64,000 bases of DNA from Pelomyxa schiedti. Its lineage: Eukaryota > Protista > Evosea. The position numbers were made by a program, and so were the translations under genes. Location of the stretch: the NCBI GenBank assembly GCA_020536535.1, contig JAHLWZ010000693.1, positions 1 to 64,000 of the forward strand. The letters are read 5' to 3'. The notes below the pieces were generated by a model that was not told the origin of the DNA, ran no database searches, and saw only the letters and a list, made by a program, of their open reading frames with translations. Below, piece by piece: positions 15,169 to 40,963 of this stretch (within the stretch, counting starts at the first letter, position 1; the number at the start of each line of letters is the position of its first letter).

Positions 15169-18100
15169 TTATGGTTTTTGTTGGGGTAGATTTTTAAATA
15201 CAGAGATCATAACGTGGTGAAGCTGTGGAGCATCCATTATTGTGAAGTGATTTCCAGGTGCTCGTGAGCAGGTTACCTCGCCGCCTAGCATGGAGAGCCA
15301 CAGCCCCATTGTGGGAATTCCGGTGCGTTGCCTTTGATTGTGTTAGTTGAAAGTGATTGTTGTAATGAAAGTGCCAGTTTGGGTTGATTTATGTTTGTTA
15401 AGAAAGGCAGAGGAAGGCTTACTCCGGAATGGCACCAGGTGTGGTTATCTGGAGTGGATCAGCTTCAGAAGCTAGAACCACAATTGTATGACCGCGGAAA
15501 AATGTGGAATGGTCAAAGGATGCTGTTAGCTTGTTTTCCACTATGGCACAGTTGACCTGGATTTGAACGTGTGACCTCCCTGGTGATGAAGAGAGAATGA
15601 CGGGCTGCATACTTCTTTGGATACATAAGTCATATCAACAGAGTCTAGTCCACACAACCTAAAGAAGTGTTTCCAACAGTTTGGGTTTTGGCAGGCATCG
15701 GTAGGTTCAGGTTCTTCTAAAGCAGTCTTTGTGATACTGTCATTAAGAAGGTGCACCAATTCGTGGTACGGCTTCCTACACATCACCTATGGAAAATAAG
15801 GAATTTACAAATGTGACCACATACAAATGCATAGAAAATCAAGAACATTTCTGTAACGTCTCTATCACTAGAGAAAATGGGCATGCCGGGATTAGGGGGT
15901 TTTATGGGATCAAGGAGTATAAGTTCAACCCGATACCCCTTTTCATACAGTTCTGAGGCCGCCATTATAGCAACTAAGCAGGAATACGATAGACCTAGAA
16001 TATAAACAGGACTGGGTGGCTCATGTTGAGAAATTGAAAGGATGATAGTGCAGTAAATCGAGACAAGCTCAGGTAAGGAGTGAATCTCATTCCCAAGTAG
16101 CATGTCTTCCATGCAAGGGTGATGTAATGCGATGAGAGGTTGGTTATCTGGAATGTGTGGAAGCATTTCGCGATACCATTTCCCATGTGTAGCCCAAGGT
16201 GCTATTACAAACAAAGGAGGGATGTTGGAGGCTGTACTGCCTTGCCGAATGACTACCACACTCTTGGAGTGAATTGGTGAGAGTAGGGGGGAAGAAGGTT
16301 TGATAGAGGCGTCAAAGGTCTTGATGGGCATACTAACGTCGCCAGAGGAAACGCCAGACGCTACAGCATCAATCAATTCTGATACTGAGAGTTCTAGTAT
16401 AGTTGATGGAGTTATTTGGATATTTTTGTTGCACGTTGATAGAATGTTATGTAGCTGAATACTCACAAGTGAGTCGAATAAGCCAATCTTCGCGAGTGGT
16501 GCGTTAGTATCAATTGCAGACAATTCCACGCCGATTGTACTTTTCAATGCTGCCTGGACAATCTGACCCGCGTGCAGATATCGTACATTGCTGTCTAGGG
16601 TGGGGAGAGGCTTATAAACTGTAGACGCAACAACTTTGAAGGAGGTTTTTGTTACATCTCCCGAAGTAGGACTTGGGTTAACAACTGTAACTACCCCTGG
16701 TAAGGAGTGTGCGTTCTGCAAAAGATGTGATAGAGCACGTAAACAACTGTGTACTGGAAAAATGGCAGATAAAGAGTTAGTCAAAGTATTCCGTGAAAGC
16801 CCCATTCCATGCCACTGAGGCCACTGCACAACCATAACATGATGACGAAAGTCGCTCAGGCACACTCCAGTTACAAAAGCTTCCATAGCGGCGTTCGCTG
16901 CAGCATAGCAAGCCTGACCAGGGGCCCCATACAAAGCAGACAGGGAAGAGAAGATGCTGATCACGCAAGGATTCGTCGCTGACACGGTACTCCGCAGAGC
17001 ACCAAGAAGAGACACTGCACCACCAAGCTTGGGTCTCAGGGTGTGCTCAATAAGTTGCTGTGAAATGAACTCGAATTTTGCATTCCCTGCAACAGCTGCA
17101 CAGTGAAAAAGAGTATTCAAAGAGGAACTTGCACTAAAGACTTGTTGAAGAGCCTCCACAGTCGATTTGCTTTCACTGATGTCAACTTGTAATTGATTGG
17201 GGGAGGAGAGTTTCGTCCTACTGAAGCCCCAAACTGTGTTGGCTGAATTGGATTTGCACCACGAGGTAATTAGTTGTGGAATTGCACCGGAACTGCCAGT
17301 AATCAAAACATCTTTATTTTTAAGATCATGAGGTGAACGGCAAGTTATTGACAGCGGTTCGATTTGTGGAATATAACGCTGATGCTGTCGGAAGGAAATT
17401 ATGGAATAACTCCCTCCACCAAGAGAAGAGAGTCTCTTCATCGATTTAAGTGCTTCGTGGGCCATAGTGTTTACTACATCATTGTCAATGGATGACGGGC
17501 ATGCTAAATCTACTACTGATACAACTAGGTTAGGATCTTCTAGGCATAAAGACTTCACAATGGCAACAAGAGCAGCATACAGGGGGGATGGAGGGTAATT
17601 TCCAGTCACAGGAATATAAAAGGCGCCAAAGGTGACCAATTGTACACAGGATTTTAGACCAACCCTGGTAGTGCGTTGGCAAAAGGTTTGAAGAACGGAA
17701 ACGGTCTCGTAAAGTTTACTAGAGAGGACTGTGCAATCAGAGCTTTGGGCATCAGTTTCTTCAAAATTGGCAATTACTACGAGCAGAGGAACCGATGAGC
17801 GGAGGTTTTTTAGTGTGTGGCTTGTGCTCGAGGTTATATAAGATGCAGAGCTACTCAAACAGCTTGTCCATCCCCCAAGCGATTTCAAATGTATCGAGTA
17901 GGTATTTGCCCATTGTAGTCCAGGATTTTGGTGCCTCATTGTAAGGACAACAGCAGTAATTCCACGACTGGTGTGCGAGAGCGGAATCTCCCTTTTCTTC
18001 GACTGCTTCCAGCAACACTGATATAAAAAACTTCTAACATCTTGAGGTGAAGCTGTAGTCAGGTCACTCATAATTACTTCTGGGCTGACTAAATGCATTT

Positions 18101-21100
18101 TAAGGCCTTTAACAACTAAATCCATTGTTCCCTCAGAAAATGGAAGTAGTGATGCGCGCATGTCACTCTTCGGTTCACATCTCTTAGCAAATATCTTGCC
18201 TACTAAGGTGTTACTGTCTGACCCATATGGAGATTTGAGTTTCACAATAACATCAAGTGTAAGAGGTCCGTCCAGTAGCGAGCTTACCTCAAAATATGAT
18301 ATGTGAAATGGAACCCACCACTTCTTTGCACTGCTAGTAGGTAAGAGGAGAAGAGCGCCAAATGCACACCCCTGTAAGCAGGCATCCAATGTCCTAGTCA
18401 CCTGTTCCACTTGAATGTGATTTGTGTCCTCTTCCATTTTAACGCGCGTCATAATGAGGATGTTCCACTTCGTTTTTCGTAGGATTAGAACTTGCTGTAC
18501 CAGTTGAAAAGCCTTTCCATATTGGAATCCTTGCTTCTCCAAAAGAGAATAAAAGGGATGGGCATCCTCAGGAGTAGTGCTACTAAGCTCAGAATCTTTA
18601 ATTTTTGGAATTTTTACAGGAACCTTGCTTGATATGTCTCCACTACAATACAATGGTGTTAACTCAGCCGTAGATGCACTGCCATGGATTGAGAAAGTAC
18701 ACTTTTTCCCATTTTCCGTAAAATTGACATCAATTGGAGTGCCTGATTCTACAAGCAGTGCTTTGTGTACATGAAAAGATGAAATGCATCGGACAGGTGT
18801 TTCTGATAGAATAGAGGCAATAAAATAGGTGGCTGGGGCAATATTGATCCCAAAGAGTTTATGTTCTGAAATCAGAGGAAGGGAGGCGGGATGAAGCTGA
18901 AATTTGGAAGTTCCAACAGATACTGGGGAAGTGAGATCTTCTCTGTCATATTGATAGGTTGGGAGGGAGAGGATGTTGTGTTTTGTTGGAGGGAACACTA
19001 TATCCATGAGTGTTTTCCAATTTACAGCAACCCCATTTTCCCATAACTTGCCAGCCACTCCAATAACATGCGCGAAGACAGTTGGGAATGTTGGGGTCTT
19101 GACATCAAAAAGGTCTAATTGCTTTGTTCCATTCTGAAAAAGAATGGAGCTGGAAAAAGGAGTCTTGGTACCAGAATTCATTAACTGCTCCCAAGAAGAT
19201 AAAAGTAAGTCTGAAGAAAATTCCTTCCCCTCGAATGTAATATTACGGGGGATCAGTGCACTTTGATTTGGAGGTAGAGATGCAGTACTGTTCGACAATA
19301 AAAAAGCTATCACTATGCTTTGTGGAGAGCACGCATCTCTCTTTATTTCGATTGGGGTTTCATTTAACATTAAAGATTCTTTCAGAAGCCAAAAAATGGT
19401 GCAGACAGTGGCTATGTGCTGTCCAACGTGAGAGGGAAGTAAAGATAATAATTTTCCTATTATTGAATTCTGTGTTGGACTCAGGTTTGCAATTAGCGAG
19501 ACTGGAAATGTTCGTGCACAAGTACATTCGTGAAAATACATTGCTAGAGTTGAGTCGTCTGCAACTGTAGGTTGTACATCTGCTAGGCGATGGAGCGTGT
19601 CAGTCAAATCACCCAGCGAGTTGCAAAGGAATGAATAACGATTCCTGTAATGTGGTCGATGCATGGCAAGAGTATATGCAATATCGTCGAGTGATAAAAA
19701 TTGTGCTTGCGCAGACAACTTCTGTGAGTGATCCCATAGAACTCTACTATAGAGATGCAAAGAAGTTTCCGTCTGCGCAGAGAGCAGAAATAGGCTAGTG
19801 TGGCTGCTAGATGCAACAGACAGATTTGTTAAATTGTTGTGGGGTATCATAGCTGGTTTGTGATGACACTCCACGGCAAGTAGTGCATGTGCATTTGTGC
19901 CACCCAAACCAAAGCTGCTTACACCACACACACGTACTTCATTTTGGTTCCACCTGTTACTTCGAGGGGTAGTATGAAAGCAAGTCTTAGTGAGATTCAG
20001 ATTGGCATCTTCACCCCCACTATTCGGAAGTGAAATGTCTGAAGGAAATAACCCAGAGTCAAGGCAAAGTGCACACCGAATCAATCCAGCAATTCCTGAG
20101 GCTGTGTTTAGATGCCCAACTGCTTTTTTTACTGACGTAAGGAGGCACTGATTTGGTGTAGTTACAGAGTGAAAGACCTTAGACAGAGCCTGAACTTCCA
20201 CTAAAGCAAAAGTACTTTAGAAAAATGCAAGAAAGTATTCAACAACCTTGATCTCCTATGATTGTGCCTGTTGCATGAGCTTCTAGGAGGGAAATCATAC
20301 CCATTGAAAAAGTGGCCCCAAGAAACCGTGTCACCTCATTGGTATTGCAAGAATTGATACAGTCTTCAATTACACGCTGTTGCCCATGGATACTGGGAGT
20401 GGTGAACCCCGCTTTCTCTTTACCATCATTATTGATGTGAATGTTCAGTATTGTAGCATAGACATGATCACCATCGTTTATAGCACTGGTCAGTCTTTTG
20501 ACACACACAGCACCCCCACCATTAGATAGCACTGTTCCTGTTCTATTTTTGTCAAAAGGTCTGCAGAAACCATCAGTCGAGAAGATAAGACCACCATCAT
20601 TGCAGGTTTGTGGCATTCTTACTGAAACGCCTCCAACAACAGCAAGGTCACATTCGCGGGATCTATCACTACTGGTTAAAAAAAAAAATAAAGTTGTGAA
20701 GGTGCACACAGTAAGGAATGTTTGGCCTGATGTAAAGCAACGAGTGAACTGCTGCAAGCTGTGTTAACCATTATTGACGGTCCTTGAAAGCCAAATACAT
20801 AGGAGGATTTCAGAGGAACGAAATCCGGCACACTCCCCAGAAGGGCAACCATCTTCTCAGGAGTATTGGCAGCTGAGGGAGGTACAACGGAGGGAGGAGC
20901 AACACCACAAAATACCCCCACATTTGTCACGTGTGTAGTAGAGGGAAATGGGGCATAACCGGCATGTTCCAAGGCAGAGTAGCATATCTCTAACCACAAG
21001 AGTTGTTGTGGGTCACTTTTTTCTGCCTCCAAACGTGACATGCGGAAAAAAGAGTAGTCAAACCATCCAAGACCCTGAAGGATACCAGAAGACGCGGTCA

Positions 21101-24100
21101 CTGAAGGAGCATCCTTCGAAGGAACTCTCGTAAGACACTCCTCACCCCCACAAATAACGCTACTCCAAAAAGAATCCAGGGAGTTTGCTTGTCCTGGCCC
21201 ACGAAATTCCATCCCTATAATGGCTAGCAAAGAATCATAGGAGACGATATCGTTGCGTTCTGGATGAGGATAATGAATCACACTTCCAGGGTCATTTGAG
21301 GAGATTGCATTCGACATAAAGCATGCAAGTGAAGTTGGGGTGGGGTAGGTGTACAGGTCAATGATCTGTAAATTAGGCCACTTCTGGAACAACAGTTGGT
21401 AGAGCTTAACTAGTGTGAGACTTGAACAACCCAAGTCAAAGAATGGGAGCGCTCTTTTCTCATACAGGTGATGTAGCTTGGTCCCCAAAACTAGTTGCAA
21501 ACTCTCCAAAATTTCTGTGCATAGTGCTGTTGCCATGCCCAAGTCTTCTGAACTGGGTATCTTACTTGGGGGTGCTTTTTCAAGTTCTTTCATGTGTTGC
21601 GACAGTAGCAGAGATCTGTCAAGCTTTCCACTCGGTGTGACTGGAAGATTTTCTTGTATAATTATCTTACTTGGGATCATTGAGGCAGGAATGTGTTGTG
21701 AGAGGTGCTCAACCATACTGCCTGGAGAGAGTTTTCCTGTTTCTCCGGCTTCAATAAATGCAACCAGACTATCCTCACATGTGACTGGGTCCTTATACAA
21801 ACTAACAACACAGGCAGTGACATAGTTATTGTGAAGTATGGCAGTCTCGATTTCGGAGGTCTCCATACGAACACCCCTGATCTTCACCTGAAGGCAGAGT
21901 CAGAAGTGTAGGGTGGCAATTGAAAGACCTGCAAATCTCTTCTCGTCAAGAACTCTAAATTTCCATCGGAAAGTACGCGGCAAATATCTCCAGTTTTGAA
22001 CCAAGTACTTGTGTTTGACTCGTAGAAGCCACCAGGGCCTTGGTATCCAAAATACCCTAAAGCAACTCCAGGACCGCCAATGTGTAACTCACCCTCCAAG
22101 TACGGTGCTCCTCTTTCAGTATCTGGTGGTATGTTGAATTCCATGTTGCGTATTGGCTTTCCAATGGGAACACGTTCATTGTACCAAGGAACAGAAGAAT
22201 TGGGATGATTTTGCTTAACAGCAGCCGCGAGTTGAAGGAGATCTTTGGGGAATACAAACATTGTACAGAACACAGTTGTTTCTGATACCAAGAAAGGGTG
22301 AGCAACAACTTTAAAACCCAAGTCATACCTGTGGGACCATAAGCATTTACAAGGGTGAGTGCTGGAAGAGCAGTTTGAAGGTCACAAAGGTGCTTGAAAA
22401 TGATCGGCTCAACACCTTTGAGAATTCACTATGGTTCAAAGAGAATTGCTTTACCAGTTAATATCCTCTTCATTGATGGTACAACAATCTCTCCTGTTCT
22501 TAGCATATCGACAAGTGAAGGAATAAATGCAGGTGGCACAAAAGCAGACGTAACACCATTATTCTTTAAGAAAGAGAAGTACTCTCTCTTACTTCTACGG
22601 ACTGCATCGGGACAGATAACAAGTGAGGCACATGCTGTTAGAGGAGCAAGAATTTCAAGAACTGAGACATCAAAATGCGATGGAGTCCACATTGATTGTG
22701 TGAACTGTGGAGGGAGAGGAGGTTTGATGTCCTCCATAAAGCATGACAATAAATTTAGAGTACTCCTGTGGGATACACAAACACCCTTTGGCGTACCTGT
22801 TGTTCCTGATGTAAAAATAATATAGGCAGTTATTTGGGGAATGCATTTGGCCACAGGAGAGCATGAGTTGGAGTAGAAAGAGGGCTCATTGCTGGATCGT
22901 ACTTTGTAGTTCCCCGCAATGTGGGAGCTAAAAACGACAATGCTACATTCCACAGTTTCTTTAGAAGGGGATGATTTCTTGCAATTGGGAAGAATTTCGA
23001 AAGCTATCACCAAGTTGCTTCCGCATATGGCTTGGGCTAGTGGGTGCAATGGTTTGCTGCAAAGGATAACACATGGTGACAACTTGTTGACAATTTTCTG
23101 CAACCTTGAAATTGGGCTTTGTGTGTCCAGTGGAATATAAATACGTTCACAGATCCAAGTAATAGCGGCAGCCAAGGCATACTCAATGGAGGGTTGGGAC
23201 AATACAATTACCCGAGATGATGTGTAAGGAAGAAGAGCACTAAATGCACGAGAGGTTCTCATGATGGTCTGGTAGGTACAGAAAAATTCATTGTAACAAA
23301 TAGCGGGATAAGAAGGTGTCTTGCAACAGGACATGGAAAGAAGTTGCCCAATAGTTGAAGAACTGGGTTCACTCAATGTTGATAACTGTGTTGGGTGTAC
23401 TTGTTCAGAGACTATGTGGGGCATTTCAAGTTGGAGGGGAGCATCTGGTTTTAGACACGCTACTGGATTGTTAAGTGGTTGTCTCATTTGTAGAGTGGCA
23501 AACTGTGAAAAACGATTCAACATATTGGAAGCCACTGATGTGCTTATATCCGGGCAATGTTGAAGTTTTGCAAAGTAACCACCACCATTTGGAATAATAA
23601 GTAGACTGAGAGGGAAGGCCACTGATTCATCAGGTATTTCCAGACTCTCACAGGCACCTATGCCAAATAAATGTTTCTCACTCAAGTGCCCACCACACTG
23701 GCAGAAGTGGGGACTCAAGTCTTGGCATGGGTCTGGGAGTGATTGGATTCCAAAATAAACATGTGGGCGAATGAGAGCTTTATTTTTGGATGGAAATAAC
23801 GATTGCGACACCTTGGAAAAAGGGATTCCTCTGAATTTTTTACTATCCATCACTTGTTGTCTTATTTGTAAAATGTACTCAGCAAAATTTGGTAGCCTAT
23901 TGGTAAAATCCAGTATTGAGCGGATAAGAATGGTGTTTGCGTAACAAAAAATAACAGATCTATCCTGCGCACTTCTTAAAGTAGCAGCAGTTCCAATGAC
24001 AATGTCATCCTGACAAGAAATTGAATGTACAAACAGTGTCCATAAAGAAAGTAAAATCGTAAATTGTGAAGCCCTGTTACAAATCAGAGGAAGGTAACAA

Positions 24101-26221
24101 ATAGAGTCCGGACACACTGAAACATGTCCATTGCCTTCATAACTAACTCTTTGAATGTGGTACCCAAGGCACAAGAAACTGAGCTTCCACGAAAGGATGA
24201 ACTGGCAGCAGAACCACGCACAAACGGCAAATTTAATGTCATAATACTGCCATTAAGAAGTGACTTCCAATGACCGAGTGGTTCTACTGCTGGGAGACAA
24301 CGAGTTGAGAGATGAAGATTCCATATGACATATGGTATAGTTGTTTGAGTACCCAGAGTGAAACCCGAGGACTTGCCCTCATATGCCTCCTTAATTCTAT
24401 GGAAAAGGGCGGCAGCACTAAATAAGTCTGTACATAGATGGTGCACTGCAATACCAATTGCTGTATTCAAAACAGAAGTCCTACATGATAGGAAAAACAC
24501 GCAAGCTCTCAGATATTGCCCGTTAGAGGGGCCCAACATTGGTTGATGCAAAAATTGCCCAACCTTTTCTCATGTGAGGAAAATATTGGGCAATTTCTGC
24601 TTTTAACCTTAGTTGCGATGCGTGTCTTCATTTCAGTTGGAGACAGCGCCTCTGTAATGGTTTCATTGATAAATGCACATTCAAAAGACGTTGACATTTG
24701 CTTATGCATCTCTCGCACAGAGACTGGACAGCAATACAGTGAGCCGTCCCCTTTATTTACATAGTACTTTGTTCTGAGGATTTCGTTCTCTTCCACTGCA
24801 TCCTGACAGGCACAGTAAAACCTTTTGGTGTCCAAACACCCGCCATCAAAGCACCCAGTAAACATGTTATGAAGCAATGAGTGATGTTGTGGTGGAATAT
24901 ATTGCTGAAGTGACCAAAATTCTTCTTGAATGGAAGAAGCAATATAAGGACAGTGGCTCCTATGCACACAAGAATACATATAAACAAGGGACACAAGTAA
25001 ACGACTGTAGAGAGCCAGCACGGTATATCCTCCTGGTTCAGGAAGAAACCAGTAGTGACTGGCTAGAAGTTGATGAAAATCCCGGGTTTGTTTTTGACTG
25101 AGATGTTGATTGATGGATAAGTTTTCTGCCAAACCACAAGTCAGGCATGAAAATTGGTGCCAAGTTGGGATATGTTGCAGAAGAGAGTTCAAAGCTAAGG
25201 GTTCTGGAATAGTAAGAAAAGGTGGCATATTCACCACTTGTGGTAATTTCCGTGCTACGAACGCTCGCACCCAGTTTTCTACCTTATCTTGGAAAATGGA
25301 TGAGACTTCCACACTTGTCGCTGCCTCCACCATTTCCGGACACTGCAAATTGCATTGATACGAGGGAGCAACCCATAGGCCAAGCCAGTCCACTGAAATT
25401 CCGTGATTTGACAGCACACACAGTGCGGAAAGGAACAAAAGGGGTGTGCTGCAGTCACACGTGCACAGTCTGTCTCTTGGTCTACATATGAAGTCAATAT
25501 CCTCCCATGAATGAGCAAGAATCACAGCAGAATTCCCATAATCTCCCTTTGCGCCGGGATCAGTGTATCCCTCGTTCTCTTGCTGTAGAGGAGAAACGGC
25601 AGGGGTCACAAATCCTAGAATATCGCACTGGACTCCAATACTACCCATAAGTGACTGTAAGCGGGTGGCGTGGTCCAAATCCGGGTTTGAATCTGTCTGT
25701 TGCGGCAGTAGTTGATCGCCGGTGGGGTGCAAGTACGAGTCGCCAAACCTTTCAGCGAACGCATTTGATCTGCCGGACCACCCCGCTTCAGTGTCCCCGC
25801 CACTTCCAAGTACCAAACAAAAAACGACGCCGGCAGATCGTCCTCCATCTCGATCCTCCGTGGAATCTCGTTCAGCTTGTCTTCCTGGTTGCCGGACTCC
25901 TTCGCGCTGAGGGAATCCCTCAAGGGCCCTGAGCACATCGCCGATGGATCTCACCACGACGGCGCGGCCGCGATCGTCGTACGAGCTCAAACTCGCACCC
26001 TCTTCGGCGCTTCCTGAAGTGTCTGGTCCGCTTACGCTTTTGTTGTCGGTGTTGGTGGCGCTGTCGGACGGACGCACGCAAGCTCGCTGGGAGAGGAGCT
26101 GGGAGGTCACGCATATGGAGTCGAGGAGATCTTCCCCTGGTTTCCACAACGACGACCACGCGGCAACGTCGGTCGTACAGCCGCTGGGCACCACGAGTAC
26201 ATTGCCCTTGTCGTTCTCCAT
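15169..26221 (-). CDS. Hybrid NRPS-PKS megasynthase: (PKS remnant)-C-A-T-KS-(AT remnant)-DH-KR-ACP-TE
   Basis: C: HHLCTDL, EILRTKY. A: YIIFTSGTTGTPKG, FDVS, NAYGPTE, GELHIGG, FKTGD, KIRGVRME, PVTPSGKLDR. T: FFDLGCSSL. KS: DPQQ, NTACSSS, EAHATGT, KKAVGH. DH: HKLFGINIAP, LDACLQ. KR: ITGSSGAI, YAAAN. ACP: GLFDSL. TE: GLSYS, PGNHF. The ORFs are joined by short GT-AG introns. Confidence 0.93.
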
Positions 26222-30895: not shown

Positions 30896-33800
30896 CTAGG
30901 ACTTGGATGTTTTGAGAACTCCTTTGGTGACGGGCTGTGGGAAATCCAGTTTCCATTTCGTAAGTCCCCAGACTTGGGTTGCATACTGCTCGATACTGTT
31001 GTCACTGCTGAACCTTCCCATTCCCGCAATGGTGAAAAGGCACTTCTTGTTCCAAAGTTCACGGTTGAGGAACTCGGTGTCCACGAGGTTCTGCATGGCA
31101 ACATACTGTGGGAAGTCATGGCCCAGAAGGTAGTAGTCATTCCCGCCCCACAATGGATCCATCAAGGGCTTGTAGAGAGGGTACGGCCCGAATTCGCCGT
31201 TCTCAAGGCTATTTATTTGTCAGTTCGGAATGCCAATTAAATTACTCGGGGAATTCCTACCTGCGAAGTACTCCATAAAGGCGGTAATCTATGGCAGATG
31301 GGGGTCGGCTCCTTATGCCTTGCACTTGCTTTGGGAAGGTATCAATTTTTACAAAACAAAAAAGAGGTAACTCACATCGGTCCTAGCGCCAAAAATGTAC
31401 ATATTCTCAAATCCGATGCTTTCTCCAATTTCTACGTTGGCACCTGTACCAGTGTCAGATTGGAGACAAACGTGATGAATTTAGATCACCATCCATGGTC
31501 CCAAGGATGAGTCCTCCATTCATTGCAAACCTATAGAGCGTGAGGTGAAGTACAAGATTATGATTTTTTAAAGTACTTCATATTGCTTGTTCCTGAAGCC
31601 TCTGTTCCAGCAGTACTAATATGCTCGCTGATGTCCGCGGCCGGAATGATTTTTTCTGCCAGAGACACACTATAGTTGGATATGAACACAACCTTGAGCA
31701 AATTTCCAACATCTGGGTCATTGTTTATAACCTGAGAAAGAATGAGAGCTTTCCAATTGAGGTTTGGTTGGTTTACCTCTGCAACATTGTTGATGAGCAT
31801 AATAACTACTTTGGCTCTCTCATATCCGGCCGCTGCTTTTCCGGCAAAAATTTGTACACGAGGGACAACATTCTCCCTCTCCTTGGGTGTCATCATTTTT
31901 ATTGTGTGATAGCGGTGGATAATGCCCAGAATATTGAGTAGTTGCCTCTTATACTCGTGTATTCTCTTGACCTTTTTGTTGAAAAAAAATTAACACAGAA
32001 GTTTCGATAAAAATAGCCTGCCTGAATGTCAAACAGGGCTGTGGGAGTAAGAGTCACTGTGCCATTTGTTCTTTTCAAAACTAAGTTCGCCAGAACCGTC
32101 TTTGCATGGATCTTGCAATCTTCAAGAGCCTAACCAAGGGATGAACCCTAAAACACATATCTACTGATTAACAACCTGCAGCACTTTAGGGTTTACATTC
32201 TCTGGCTCTTTCAACTTTGCCAGGAGCTCTAAGTTTGTTGCCCAGTCTTTAGTCCCAAGGCAAGAGCTAATGAGCTATACAAAGTGAGGAACAGAATACT
32301 GACCAGTGACCTCCCAACCTCACTTAAAGGCCTGTTACAGCACAAAATCCACCGCCTTGGAGTGACACCATTGGTGATATTAATTATCTTGCCAGGCCAA
32401 AGTCTGTTCCATTCTCCAAAGAGTGAAGATTTGAGAATATCGGTGTGGATACGTGCTACTCCATTAACAATATGACTACTGACAAGGGCCAGATTTGCCA
32501 TACGAACCTGAACCTTTTAGTGTAATGAAGGATTGGTCAGGTACTGCTAACCGTCTTTGGAGAGCCTTCTTCAATGATGGAAAGATGCGAGATAATATCA
32601 TTTGCTGGGTTAAATGTTGCAGTTACCTTGTATTTGTCAGTAAACTCTCCATTAAAAGGGGAAAAACCTGCTGCAAGAATCGGTGATTGATCTCAAAGAT
32701 GATTTGCATGTGCCTGGGGAGAAGCCATTCTATCATTGGCACAGGCCACCTCTCCAGTGCTTCAGGAAGAACAGTGTGGTTGGTGAAAGAAAATGTCTTC
32801 GTAACGATATCCCAAGCCTGCAAAACTTTCATTATCGAAGTGGCGAGTTTGAAAGAGATACCGTGTCCCAGTTCAAACGGTAAATATCCAAAAATTGCCT
32901 CATGAGTTCCGGAATGGATCTAATCACGGAATTGGTCCTAACAGGAGGAAAAAGGTATTACATTGTTGGGTGTGTATCATTGAGCTGGATAGCCGTTTTT
33001 TCTGCAAATTGCTCAAGTGTAGCCTTGCTCCTTCGGTGTCTTCGCATTATATCCTGTATGGAAGCACAGCACAAGAAGAACTGTTGCTTTAGCCTCAACT
33101 CACGGCCTGCAGAAATAGTCAATGAAAAAGATAGTTAGATCGGCAATTACCATGCAAAGTATCTGTTTTGGGATAAAGAACACAGGAAAGTTCTTCATCA
33201 ATTTGCTTCTCTTTTAGTTGCTCCCAAGGATCCACGTGCCTCAGTGCTAGCTCTTCCAACTTATAGTGAGTCACTGGCTTGGAGCTCCATAACCGCAGTG
33301 TGAGCGTATTTTTAGTCCCATACCCAGGAATAGGAATATCATAAGCAATTGCGCCAACTTGGTTTGCAGGCACCCACTCGAATTTAATATCGCCTTTTTC
33401 ATCTACAAAACAAGCGTTTTTATAAGTTAAAAAGAAAAAGGGCGGCTAGCAAACCTGTTGTTATAGCGACATGACCTCCAAAGCCGATTTCATACTGGAT
33501 ATCGGTTCGACAGACTTCCCAGGGGTTCCCTTGTTCAAGCCAGAAGTCAGGAGTTTCGACTTGCTGTTTGTGGATGATATTTTGCTCAAATTGGCCATAT
33601 TTATAGCGGATTCCATATCTATCGTTGCTTGTTAAGTTTCCATACTTCTATGAAAAAGCTTACCCCCAGGAAGGATAGTTGAGTGTTGCTAGGGAATCTA
33701 CAATGCAGTTAACAGAATGGAAGAAGAAACAAAGTGAGAGCAAACCCAAAAAGCAAGCTGCCAACCTCCCTAGACCCCCTGAGCCGAGGCCAGGGTCATG

Positions 33801-34483
33801 TTCTTCATCTTCCACACCCTCAAGTTCCATGCCGAAGCGCTGATAGTGTAAGAAAAAGACCAAGACTCAAATAGTTTTTGTGAAAAGAAGCGGATTTTAC
33901 ATGGATAGCCTCGTTAAATGGCCCATGAAGCGCTCTGTTTATCAAAGCATTTTGCATAGCCCTCCCCATCAAAAACTCAATTGAAATATAGTAAGCCCTC
34001 TTTACTTCATTGTCCCTGAACAGCCTCTGTGTATCATTCCTTCAAAGGGGAAAAAAAAAAAGTAGAACATGTTAGGCACAAGGGGAAACAGGGAAAAAAA
34101 ACGCTGGGAGAAAGTCTAAAAATAGTCAAAATTCGTTACCAAGTCTCGATGAGGCGGTCCCTGAGAGCGAAAGAACAGGCCCTGAACATAGAGTTGTTTG
34201 ACAGGTTGATCCGGCTGCCGGCCAACGTGTACTCGTAGTGGTTAGCAATGTGCTGCATTATAGAATCCACGTCCTCAGGCACGTAGGCGGCCGTGAGCCC
34301 GAACAGAGGGTTGCTGTCAATGTCCGCCCCCAGCGACGACGGCGACACCACGGAAGTGGCGGTACGGCTCAGCCTGAGAAGCCCGCTGGCACGCAGGCCA
34401 GTGGATTCTGACCCAAGTGTGCCCTGCGGGGCAGTGGTAGATGTAGTAGTGGAGCTACTGCTGGTTGCGGTTGTTGTTGCCAT
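30896..34483 (-). CDS. PYG: Glycogen/alpha-glucan phosphorylase (GT35)
   Basis: [62 protein letters not shown] site [18 protein letters not shown]. Confidence 0.97.
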
Positions 34484-34845
34484 GGCAGTGTTCGTTGGTA
34501 GCAACAGTTCTGAGACGAAATTTTTTATTTTGGTTAAAACGGCGGTTTTTTTCTTTTGGTTTGTTTTTTTTGCTGTCCGCCGAGTGGTGAAAGGCCGCAA
34601 GAAGAAGCCCCGAAAGTTGGGAAAAATATGGAAATGGCAGCTGACCCTGTGGATCACCTCCCACCCCAGGGGGATCCGTGAGTAGAGACAACTGCAGTGG
34701 TCTGGCATTTAAGTCTTGTACATCAGAGATACTCGAACTTCTCTTTCGGGGTATCACCGCCATCAAACCGCAAAAAAAAAAAAAAAACAAACAAAACAAC
34801 AAACACCAAACACAAACAAATCAACAAGCACCAAACACAACGAAG

Positions 34846-35244
34846 ATGGACCCCGTAACGGGCTTCATGGCCAAGAAGATGGTGTCGGGGCAGATCGACT
34901 CTATCACCAGCCAGCTCGGCTTTGGCGGCGACGACAAGAAGGACGCGGAGAAGGACGCCAAGGACCGCGAGGCCGAGCGCAAGAAGGACGCGGAGGAGGA
35001 GCGCAAGCGCGAGGCCAAGAGGTCCACGGAGCGCGAGGAGCGCCACGCCCGCACCAAGGAGCGCAACGACGAGATCCGCAAGAAGTACGGCCTCGCGACC
35101 ACCTCGACCCCCGGCGCCCCTGCCTCCAGTTCCTCGTCCTCGTCCTCGTCCTCCTCGTCTTCTTCATCTGCCGCGAAGCCGGCGTCGTCCGCTCCTGCTA
35201 GTAGCAGCTCCTCTGGATCGTCTGATGGGTGCTTGTTGTGCTGA
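34846..35244 (+). CDS. Complexin/synaphin-like small protein with C-terminal CaaX (CLLC)
   Basis: 132 aa, intronless. N-terminal FMAKKMVSGQIDSITSQLGFGGDDK, charged helix ending EIRKKYGL, Ser-rich linker, CLLC stop. Confidence 0.65.
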   Translation: MDPVTGFMAKKMVSGQIDSITSQLGFGGDDKKDAEKDAKDREAERKKDAEEERKREAKRSTEREERHARTKERNDEIRKKYGLATTSTPGAPASSSSSSSSSSSSSSSAAKPASSAPASSSSSGSSDGCLLC

Positions 35245-35636
35245 GATTGCTTAATGAATCTCTGCTGGGATGAACCAACCCTCTAGATTACTCTACACCT
35301 TTGGAAAACCAATGACCTCACCACCCACTACTGTAAACACAATAAAGATTCTCTTTCACTTAACTTCCTTTACCTCCAAGAACTTTGTTCCCGGTCAATT
35401 CCATTAAAGGCGAACAAATCCATGGTGGTAGTATCTATCCGGCGTACCAAGATGAAGGTCATTGGTTGGAAACTTCACAGAGGGTGAAGACAAGTGTTTT
35501 CCGCACACCCAATCCAACTTGGGAAAATTTATTCAGTAACAGTTTTTGTGATCCAGTCTCGGACAATACGCGCATTTTTTCCTGTTCCAAACAACACGAT
35601 GGTGTCACCTTGGGCCCAACAACAGGGAAAAATTAA

Positions 35637-36907
35637 ATGCTACAACATTGGGAATTCAGCGTGTCAGTGGTGTTGTTGGTTGTCACGTCCGTCCTGGTAG
35701 TAATCACCCTGCCTCTCTCCACCATACACGGTGCGCCAACGCCATCCCATAATCAAGACCCCGGCTCGCACGTCACCGTTTCGCCGTCCAATGTTCAACT
35801 CCCCGACTCTGCCAATGTGGATCCTGGCCGAGCAGAAACGATCCCACAATGCAATCCTCTCGTGCCTAGCGACAATGGGACGTCAGTGGAGCAGGACAAT
35901 CAGCGGCAGGCTTCCCCAGAATTCTACCGGTTCGATATCGGAGAGGCGCAAGCGCATTCGTTCCATGGGTCCGTCGGCAACTTGCCGGGAGTCGAGCACG
36001 TGTATGTCATGAATCTGGAGAGAAGGCTAGATCGCCGCCTGAGAATGGCCCACATGCTGTCTTTTCTGGGAATACCGTTTCAAGTGTTCTCCGCAACCGA
36101 CGGCGTTTACCTGCAGAGGCTCGTTGATGAGCAGAGAACCATCGAGTGTGTGCCAGTGTTTAACTGATGGTTTTGTTTGCCCCTTATGCAGTGATATCTA
36201 CTATCTATCTACTACCGAATTCGAGTCTGACCACACAGGGGAACCCAGGTTTGAAAGTGGAATCAACGTCAACCTCACTGAGCAGATGAGCCAACACCCG
36301 CCAGAGTCTATGGGCGGAATGGCTTGCCTTATAACAGCCCTCCGAATAATGCGAGATATCATGCACCACAACTGGACAGCCCTTGTTTTGGAAGACGACG
36401 TTGACATAGAGCTGGAAATCAGGAGTTCCATGGCTGAAATCATGATACACGCTCCCCCCACTTGGAGTACCCTTCCTAGCAGGAAACACCATTAGCTAAG
36501 CTTTTTCCAGAAGCACTACGATTGGGGCACTGTTACGAGGAACAAGGCGAATCTATCTGGGGTCCCATTTATAAGTCAACTTCGTTTCTTTGCCCTCATG
36601 CAACTATCTACAAGCCTGAGACAGCAGCTTTTATTTTGAAGAACCTGGATATTTCGTCTTGGGGCTGGGCAAATTGGGACCAGCTCCTTACCACTTTGCT
36701 TAAAGAGTGTGTTTGCCACCACTCCTAGTGATAGTAACATACTTCAGTAACCGGAACTCTGAAGTATTCGAGTCTTACAGTATCTTTCCCGCTTTGGTTG
36801 TGCAAACTGACCGCACCACTGGTGACATCCCCTCGTCAGCTTCCAAATGGCAAAACACACTACAATCCTCATCCACTTCTAAACTGGCAGGTTTTGTACT
36901 ACACTGA
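35637..36907 (+). CDS. Glycosyltransferase family 25, type II membrane protein
   Basis: N-terminal TM; VYVMNLERRLDRR, FSATDG, GGMACL, ALVLEDDVD. Confidence 0.85.
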
Positions 36908-39979: not shown

Positions 39980-40963
39980 TTACATCTGCTCCAATGCCCA
40001 GTGGAGTACATCATCACCCACGGGGTCGCGTTGAGTGGCCAGTGGGTTGTGCTCGCCCCTCCTGCCGTCTAGGTAGCCGGTGCCGCACCTGCACTTGATG
40101 GCGTAGTACTGGCCCTTTTCCATTGGTATGAAGTCCCACTGGAGCTGGCCTGCGGCATTGTAGTCCTGGTGGTAGGCGATGAGCAGGTCTGACCTGTGGC
40201 CGTCGAGGTACCCCCTTGACGAGATGTTCTCCAGAGTGAAGCCGCCGCCGTTCACGGGCCTGAGGACCCAGTTGAGGCAGGGGTTGCCGTGTGGGTTGCT
40301 TGGATTAAGCCCTGGGTCTCTAACTCTGGGCTTCTTGCCGTCGAGGAACCTCCCACTGCTGCGGCTCTGAAGCGAGTACACGGTGTCTGGCTTGATCGGG
40401 GACTTGATCTCCCAGTGCAGCGAGGTGTCGGCCATCGGGGGCTTGAACGAGATCATCGGCTCCTTGACGCCAGAGGTCCTTCCGTCGAGGAAGCCGCCGT
40501 GGCTCCTGCAGTGGATGGCGTACACGTCGTTGCTGACCTTGACCAGGGCCCAGTGCACGTGGATGTCGTCGGCGGCGACGGCGTCGTCGGCCCAGTGCAG
40601 CTCGTTGGACCCGGGCTCCCTCCCGTGCAGCCTCTTGTTGTTGTTCTTGTTCCTGATGGCGAAGAAGCCCTGGTGGCCCTCGACCGGCTCGAACGCCCAG
40701 AGAAGCGGGGGGAAGCAGATGGGCGCTCGGCCGCCGTAGACGAGCAACGGGTCGGCGGCGGCGTCGTCCTGGCTGCACCCAAGCTGGCCTCCTCCGCCGA
40801 TGCTCCTCACCGACCAGACGCCGGGCAGGGGGTCCATCACGCGGTGCAGGTCGGCCATGAGGTCGACCACGGCGCTGACGACTGGGATGGGCCTGCTGAT
40901 CTCCTCGGGCGTGGGTGTGGGCCTGGGCTCCTCGCCTGTTGGTGGCGGTGGGTTCGCTGACAT
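39980..40963 (-). CDS. Double beta-trefoil (ricin-B/fascin-like) repeat protein
   Basis: Intronless 327-aa ORF with six ~45-aa repeats of Y/F-x-I/L-x(5-7)-LDG...L-x-W; no signal peptide. Confidence 0.7.
   Translation of the reverse strand: MSANPPPPTGEEPRPTPTPEEISRPIPVVSAVVDLMADLHRVMDPLPGVWSVRSIGGGGQLGCSQDDAAADPLLVYGGRAPICFPPLLWAFEPVEGHQGFFAIRNKNNNKRLHGREPGSNELHWADDAVAADDIHVHWALVKVSNDVYAIHCRSHGGFLDGRTSGVKEPMISFKPPMADTSLHWEIKSPIKPDTVYSLQSRSSGRFLDGKKPRVRDPGLNPSNPHGNPCLNWVLRPVNGGGFTLENISSRGYLDGHRSDLLIAYHQDYNAAGQLQWDFIPMEKGQYYAIKCRCGTGYLDGRRGEHNPLATQRDPVGDDVLHWALEQM

Follow-up and report, generated by a model that had tools for sequence, protein, structure and literature searches.

Complexin is a textbook pre-synaptic protein, and its K69/Y70 pair is needed for SNARE binding in animals. 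Mammalian complexin-1 (PDB 1KIL, 5W5C) acts together with synaptotagmin and has no CaaX box, carrying an amphipathic C-terminus instead. Mammalian complexin-3/4 and the prenylated invertebrate isoforms have a CaaX lipid anchor for membrane targeting (PMC5445133, PMC13454271) and keep an amphipathic region before the CaaX box, a C-terminal region described as deeply conserved in animal complexins (PMC5445133). When complexin meets the SNARE complex, R48 bonds with D65/D68 of VAMP2, and R59 bonds with D57 of VAMP2 and S225 of syntaxin-1A (PMC13454271). The origin of complexin has been placed in unicellular holozoans, that is, in choanoflagellates (PMC13454271, PMC9750855, PMC7934909), and a 2026 study argued that its primordial role was the synaptotagmin-independent acceleration of regulated exocytosis, but found choanoflagellates to be experimentally intractable (PMC13454271). 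Our search of the literature for complexin together with Amoebozoa, Amorphea, Archamoebae, Entamoeba, Mastigamoeba or Physarum found no report outside Holozoa, and does not fully exclude an earlier one.

The gene described here lies in a 64,000-nucleotide stretch of a Pelomyxa schiedti contig, which was analysed as a whole and is referred to below as the window. A first-pass annotation, made from the letters of the window alone, had proposed a complexin-like SNARE regulator in a probable amoebozoan. The family and the host of that proposal were supported: P. schiedti is an archamoeba and not a holozoan (PMC8887013), and the protein scores above the curated Pfam cut-off, with the element order of the family and a CaaX end. 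We put the probability at about 0.8 that the amoebozoan has a genuine complexin (Synaphin-family) gene, present in one copy and expressed, whose product would dock on SNAREs and be anchored by a farnesyl group. Judged by sequence, the protein is supported as a true member of the complexin family, in a lineage where none was expected, and it shows one of the defining features of the family in part.

Gene structure and transcription

The coding sequence (34846..35244, +) is complete and intronless according to the open reading frame, Pfam and RNA contigs, and runs for 132 codons from an ATG at 34846 to a TGA stop at 35242-35244. This ATG was taken as the start codon because all homologues have their MD start at the same aligned position. 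Directly upstream is an A/C-rich leader (34763..34845, +) made up of a poly-A run and then a CA-rich tract, which is probably the 5' UTR; RNA-seq contigs could be placed from 34807, with extra unplaced letters farther 5' in the repeat. The 3' UTR (35245..35359, +) contains AATAAA at 35341-35346, and the poly(A) site is located 13 nt downstream of this signal, at about 35359, where one RNA contig (X3) stops matching the genome and continues with a non-genomic C and a run of A.

Contigs from two single-cell RNA-seq runs spanned 34807-35359 unspliced. Both runs also contained transcripts of the glycogen phosphorylase gene next to it, spliced at three GT..AG introns (44, 52 and 100 nt), so the sequenced material was RNA. 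A third run, from another study, contained the spliced neighbour and parts of the complexin gene. The gene is also single-copy, being the sole Synaphin locus (44.5 bits) in a six-frame search of the genome, which comprised 52,367,397 bases in 5337 contigs, the window belonging to contig C693. The exact 132-aa sequence was absent from a collection of 15 billion proteins, in which a word-based search gave no self-match, illustrating how small, fast-evolving regulators escape standard searches. The gene may be absent from the public annotation or modelled differently there.

Protein architecture and family membership

All of the elements quoted in the first-pass annotation are present in the 132-aa protein: the N-terminal motif, an E/K/R helix ending in IRKKYGL, a linker and a terminal CLLC, with residues 7-31 (FMAKKMVSG...LGFGGDDK) identical to those quoted. 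The N-terminal complexin motif (residues 1-31; 34846..34938, +) consists of MD, FMAKK, a helix and LGFGGDDK, as identified by Pfam Synaphin and by its alignment to the N-terminal part of rat Cpx1 and of complexins from sponges and cnidarians. A long E/K/R-rich helix predicted by AlphaFold (residues 31-80; 34936..35085, +) would represent the accessory and central helices. Based on an ungapped register, the central-helix equivalent covers residues 59-83 (35020..35094, +) and ends in IRKKYGL (77-83). A Ser/Ala/Pro-rich linker (residues 84-128; 35095..35229, +) is predicted to be disordered, with no secondary structure and pLDDT <50, and leads to the C-terminal CaaX box CLLC (35230..35241, +), a predicted farnesylation site. 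The AlphaFold model, which took a 13-sequence alignment as input, has a low-confidence helix at residues 3-23 and a helix at 31-80 (pLDDT ~89-91 over residues 61-80), and residues 84-132 are disordered. The family order of N-terminal motif, accessory and central helix, and unstructured C-terminal domain is therefore present, as predicted from this model and the alignment, and is collinear with that of 12 relatives.

Reading of the ORF revealed no signal peptide or transmembrane segment. There is also no amphipathic C-terminal helix, as residues 84-128 have neither a helix predicted by AlphaFold nor a Pfam match, and in this respect the Pelomyxa protein differs from complexin-3/4 and the prenylated invertebrate isoforms, which it resembles in its CaaX anchor. 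The membrane-binding C-terminus typical of the family would be provided by the CLLC end, for which prenylation is predicted. Cysteine at position -4 occurs in 13/13 of the aligned complexin-like proteins, all of which end in a CaaX box and also have the MD start and the KYG motif in common. CaaX boxes in which X is cysteine favour farnesyltransferase, and the genome encodes three prenyltransferase beta-subunit loci as well as ICMT and Rce1-like genes.

The top Pfam match was Synaphin (PF05835): residues 7-88 align with profile positions 3-81 and score 45.6 bits (E 1.1e-11), the curated cut-off being 27. Every other Pfam family among the 17 rows at E <= 10 fell below its own cut-off. The nearest ESM Atlas clusters were all complexin (top score 0.87, 183 shared features). 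We also built an independent HMM from sponge, cnidarian and related complexins only, leaving out the Pelomyxa protein and its nearest clade, against which residues 1-88 scored 53.2 bits, compared with a maximum of 14.9 in 2000 full shuffles. Most of this score comes from short stretches at either end, namely the N-terminal motif and the helix terminus IRKKYGL: shuffling residues 31-75 alone left a mean of 42 bits, and shuffling both ends alone left 14 bits. The residue order of the middle thus adds only ~11 bits, and 12/2000 middle shuffles scored as high as the real sequence. The suggestion of the first-pass annotation that the protein be compared with the Synaphin profile, with low-complexity sequence controlled for, accordingly had a positive outcome, the mean of 42 bits after shuffling of the middle being the low-complexity control.

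Comparison with described complexins

The CaaX complexins of sponges and cnidarians, represented by the Corticium candelabrum complexin-2-like cluster (XP_062509862.1) and the Montipora foliosa complexin-like protein, are 30-35% identical to the Pelomyxa protein. They are similar in length (100-120 aa) and show the elements of the Pelomyxa protein in the same order, from the MD start through the F.AK and LGFG-acidic motifs and a charged helix bearing RHA and IR.KYGL to a short unstructured tail and the CaaX box. However, they keep R59 and R63 in register (AERE..R..IR.KYG), whereas Pelomyxa has T and N at these positions and arginines one residue earlier. The Pelomyxa protein further differs in having four extra N-terminal residues, a much longer poly-Ser linker and an amoebozoan source.

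More of these peculiarities recur in a clade of environmental proteins, here called the P0001 clade after its best-matching member (P0001, P0006, P0007, P0009 and P0010; Logan run SRR28521186 and JGI metagenomes 3300048856, 3300050354 and 3300050364). As in the Pelomyxa protein, the N-terminal part of its members carries an insertion of four residues, R59 is replaced by T and M62 by a basic residue, the KYGL-P/A-T motif is present, and the C-terminal tail is Ser-rich and has a CaaX box. They differ in that Y52 is replaced by H rather than by the R of Pelomyxa, and in a complexin-CDC20 synteny that is absent from Pelomyxa.

With mammalian complexin-1, the Pelomyxa protein shares the N-terminal motif, the acidic stretch and the equivalents of R48, I66, R67, K69, Y70 and G71, but Y52, R59, M62 and R63 of complexin-1 are all missing.

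Contact residues and SNARE partners

An ungapped register anchored on KYG (alignment A3, against rat Cpx1 and the sponge and cnidarian sequences) allowed contact residues to be compared one by one. R48, I66, R67, K69 and Y70 of rat Cpx1 are kept as Pelomyxa R59, I77, R78, K80 and Y81. Those not kept in register are Y52 (R63 in Pelomyxa), R59 (T70), R63 (N74) and the hydrophobic M62, which is also replaced by R. The first-pass annotation had cautioned that the R59/R63 equivalents are T and N with shifted arginines, and this proved accurate: the arginines sit one residue earlier, at 69 and 73. As two of the canonical contact arginines, R59 and R63, are absent, the protein is a putative SNARE binder and fusion clamp.

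Candidate partners were found in the same genome. A plasma-membrane-type syntaxin (G000:C122; locus L026:1381-2478, -) has its best match among solved structures in 1KIL, the complexin/SNARE crystal, where it matches rat syntaxin-1A; the part of its first SNARE exon that faces complexin is near-identical to syntaxin-1A, but with A at S225. For a longin-less R-SNARE (G000:C123:21967-22224, +; locus L012:1480-1776), the best matches are Snc1 of yeast and VAMP2; E and D at 64/65 are retained in it, and D57 is replaced by Q and D68 by G. A search with the Pfam SNAP-25 linker gave no significant Qbc candidate in the genome.

Set against the known contacts, both residues of the R48-D65 pair are retained, and all three residues involved in the R59 contact differ: T in complexin, Q at VAMP2 D57 and A at syntaxin S225. 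At the level of sequence this fits co-variation of complexin and SNAREs at the R59 contact, as read from one of 21 R-SNARE matches, that one having asparagine at the zero layer.

Several further features of these loci were observed. The SNARE motif of the C122 syntaxin is broken by an intron that directly follows the zero-layer glutamine, and at the other Q-SNARE loci found, the membrane-anchor exon carries only the C-terminal half of the SNARE motif. The C123 R-SNARE has a long Thr/Ala/Ser-rich N-terminus and, in alignments with both VAMP2 and Snc1, asparagine at the position of the zero-layer arginine, which is unusual for an R-SNARE.

These substitutions raise the question of whether the protein, although a complexin homologue, no longer binds SNARE complexes, its prenylated charged helix having drifted to another membrane-associated role. 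In favour of such drift are the four central-helix changes (R59 to T, R63 to N, Y52 to R and M62 to R), the small contribution of helix residue order to the profile score, and the missing amphipathic C-terminal region. Nevertheless, the R48 equivalent and the IR.KYG end, including K69/Y70, are conserved across Pelomyxa, the P0001 clade, sponges and cnidarians; AlphaFold confidence peaks exactly over the segment that ends in IR.KYG; the SNARE residues that R59 would contact have changed as well; and R48 and Y52 are missing from a sponge complexin too. We therefore consider a loss of SNARE binding doubtful.

In the preferred reading, in which the protein still docks on SNAREs, the CaaX cysteine would be farnesylated and the protein thereby tethered to the membrane. 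Its central helix would lie antiparallel in the groove between a plasma-membrane syntaxin and a synaptobrevin-type R-SNARE of the assembling exocytic SNARE complex, and the docked helix would tune stimulus-dependent exocytosis, an action that may take place without synaptotagmin.

Relatives and evolutionary origin

A word-seeded homologue search with the single protein gave no matches. An exhaustive phmmer search with residues 1-88 against 1.84 billion representatives returned only two matches at E <= 1e-3, both of them Synaphin-positive CaaX proteins: P0001, the best match (38% identity), which comes from a Logan assembly, and P0002, which falls in a cluster with the complexin-2-like protein of the sponge Corticium candelabrum. 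As this search missed even known choanoflagellate complexins, its lack of amoebozoan matches carries little weight. A profile search (A1) gave 14 matches, 12 of them beyond the phmmer pair, including sponge-like and cnidarian sequences (Montipora complexin-like), P0016 and four further P0001-clade sequences (JGI metagenomes and ENA), with no named amoebozoan or other named non-animal among the 14. P0016 is encoded on a holozoan-looking contig, where it adjoins ECT2 and PDZ-Sec7 genes. Scanning metagenome loci with an amoeba-type profile produced 600 pattern matches, 0 of which were confirmed.

A maximum-likelihood tree built from 13 sequences placed Pelomyxa with the P0001 clade, at weak support (64/59) and on long branches. 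The Pelomyxa branch measured 1.27 changes per column, and was not nested within sponges or cnidarians.

The genomic context of the P0001 clade has a style of its own. On three separate contigs (L001:384-2375, L005:1938-3747 and L006:63-2359) the CaaX complexin is directly upstream of CDC20, and the contigs of the clade have a GC content of 55-60%, few introns and ~200-300 bp between genes. L001 also has an A/C-rich 5' leader resembling that of the Pelomyxa gene. The CDC20 proteins of the clade are all 50-60% identical to their named matches (plants, algae, animals and oomycetes), and 42% identical to Pelomyxa CDC20. A comparison with the genome of Mastigamoeba balamuthi as a candidate for the source of the clade showed a fitting GC content (60.7%), but no clear fit in intron density (3.4 per gene) or gene spacing.

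An expressed complexin in an amoebozoan implies either that the gene is older than the split between Amoebozoa and Obazoa or that a fusion regulator was transferred between eukaryotes. We tentatively suggest, at slightly less than even odds, that complexin-type control of SNARE-dependent exocytosis predates Holozoa and was present in the ancestor of Amoebozoa and Obazoa (Amorphea), surviving in Pelomyxa and an uncultured lineage as an amoeba-type subfamily with the 4-residue N-terminal insertion, T/N at R59/R63, a CaaX box and co-varied SNARE contacts. Such an older origin requires that the Pelomyxa gene was inherited vertically, as it may have been.

Alternatively, a real complexin may have been gained by horizontal transfer from another eukaryote, either a holozoan or a member of the P0001 clade, in which case the gene would be silent on the early origin of complexin. 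Such transfer would be compatible with the weak tree and with an environmental clade as the closest relatives. It would account for the patchy distribution, given that the exhaustive search gave one environmental protein plus sponge complexins and the profile search no named amoebozoan, and it agrees with the N-terminal insertion and the T at the R59 position that Pelomyxa shares with a clade whose genome style is very different and whose CDC20 is so far from Pelomyxa's. However, the long Pelomyxa branch and its position outside sponges and cnidarians imply that any transfer was not recent, and in codon usage the gene resembles one class of genes in its surroundings, GC3 being 0.86 in the complexin coding sequence and 0.87 in a ricin-type lectin ORF of the same window (39980-40963). 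The missing amoebozoan matches also weigh little, given the insensitivity of searches that overlook even choanoflagellate complexins. On balance we regard transfer as unlikely. Whether the gene was inherited vertically or transferred, it represents a natural variant without R59 and R63, apparently matched by changes in the SNAREs of the same organism, and can be used to test which contacts are essential.

Host assignment and chance similarity

The published P. schiedti assembly (52.4 Mb, 5337 scaffolds) was obtained from micromanipulated sediment cells and decontaminated only by binning and BLAST (PMC8887013), and the GC content of the complexin coding sequence (65%) is well above the window mean (46%), both of which could point to a contaminant contig from prey or another eukaryote. 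Contamination is nonetheless highly improbable and was rejected on tetranucleotide composition: the contig around the gene is at least 64 kb long, its profile in the window correlates at 0.97 with that of 25 loci on other contigs (0.05-0.61 for foreign contigs) and at 0.85-0.96 in each 8-kb sub-window, DNA depth is even and equal on both flanks (~25-29x), transcripts occur in single-cell RNA runs from two studies, and an equally high GC3 is found in other genes of the window.

That a charged, low-complexity ORF resembles complexin by chance, or that the protein is a lookalike of the PTTG1IP tail such as the first-pass annotation had considered, is scarcely credible and is effectively refuted by the Pfam score, the shuffles and piecewise Pfam searches: the sequence is short, with a high content of E/K/R and Ser, and complexin-1, its best match in a sequence search of solved structures, reached only E 0.29, but 0/2000 shuffles attained one third of the real score, the E/K/R-rich middle alone matched no Pfam family, residues 1-32 alone matched Synaphin as the sole family (15.8 bits, profile positions 3-27), no PTTG1IP-type family appeared in the Pfam list at E <= 10 for what is a stand-alone 132-aa protein, and the ORF is transcribed and polyadenylated.

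Neighbouring genes in the window

Divergent from the complexin gene is a multi-exon glycogen phosphorylase gene (30965-34400, -), matched exon by exon by PF00343, whose introns at 33106-33149, 33403-33454 and 34039-34138 are spliced in RNA contigs. Just downstream of complexin, at 35637-36495 (+), there is a weak match to glycosyltransferase family 25 (23 bits, slightly below cut-off), preceded by a hydrophobic N-terminus. The lectin ORF mentioned above (39980-40963, -) encodes 327 aa with ricin-type beta-trefoil lectin repeats. GC3 ranges from 0.35 to 0.64 in most ORFs of the window, compared with 0.86-0.87 for the complexin coding sequence and the lectin ORF, which suggests two codon-usage classes, possibly tied to expression level. 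Farther upstream, at 15783-26221 (-), very long ORFs with few introns encode a hybrid NRPS-PKS megasynthase.
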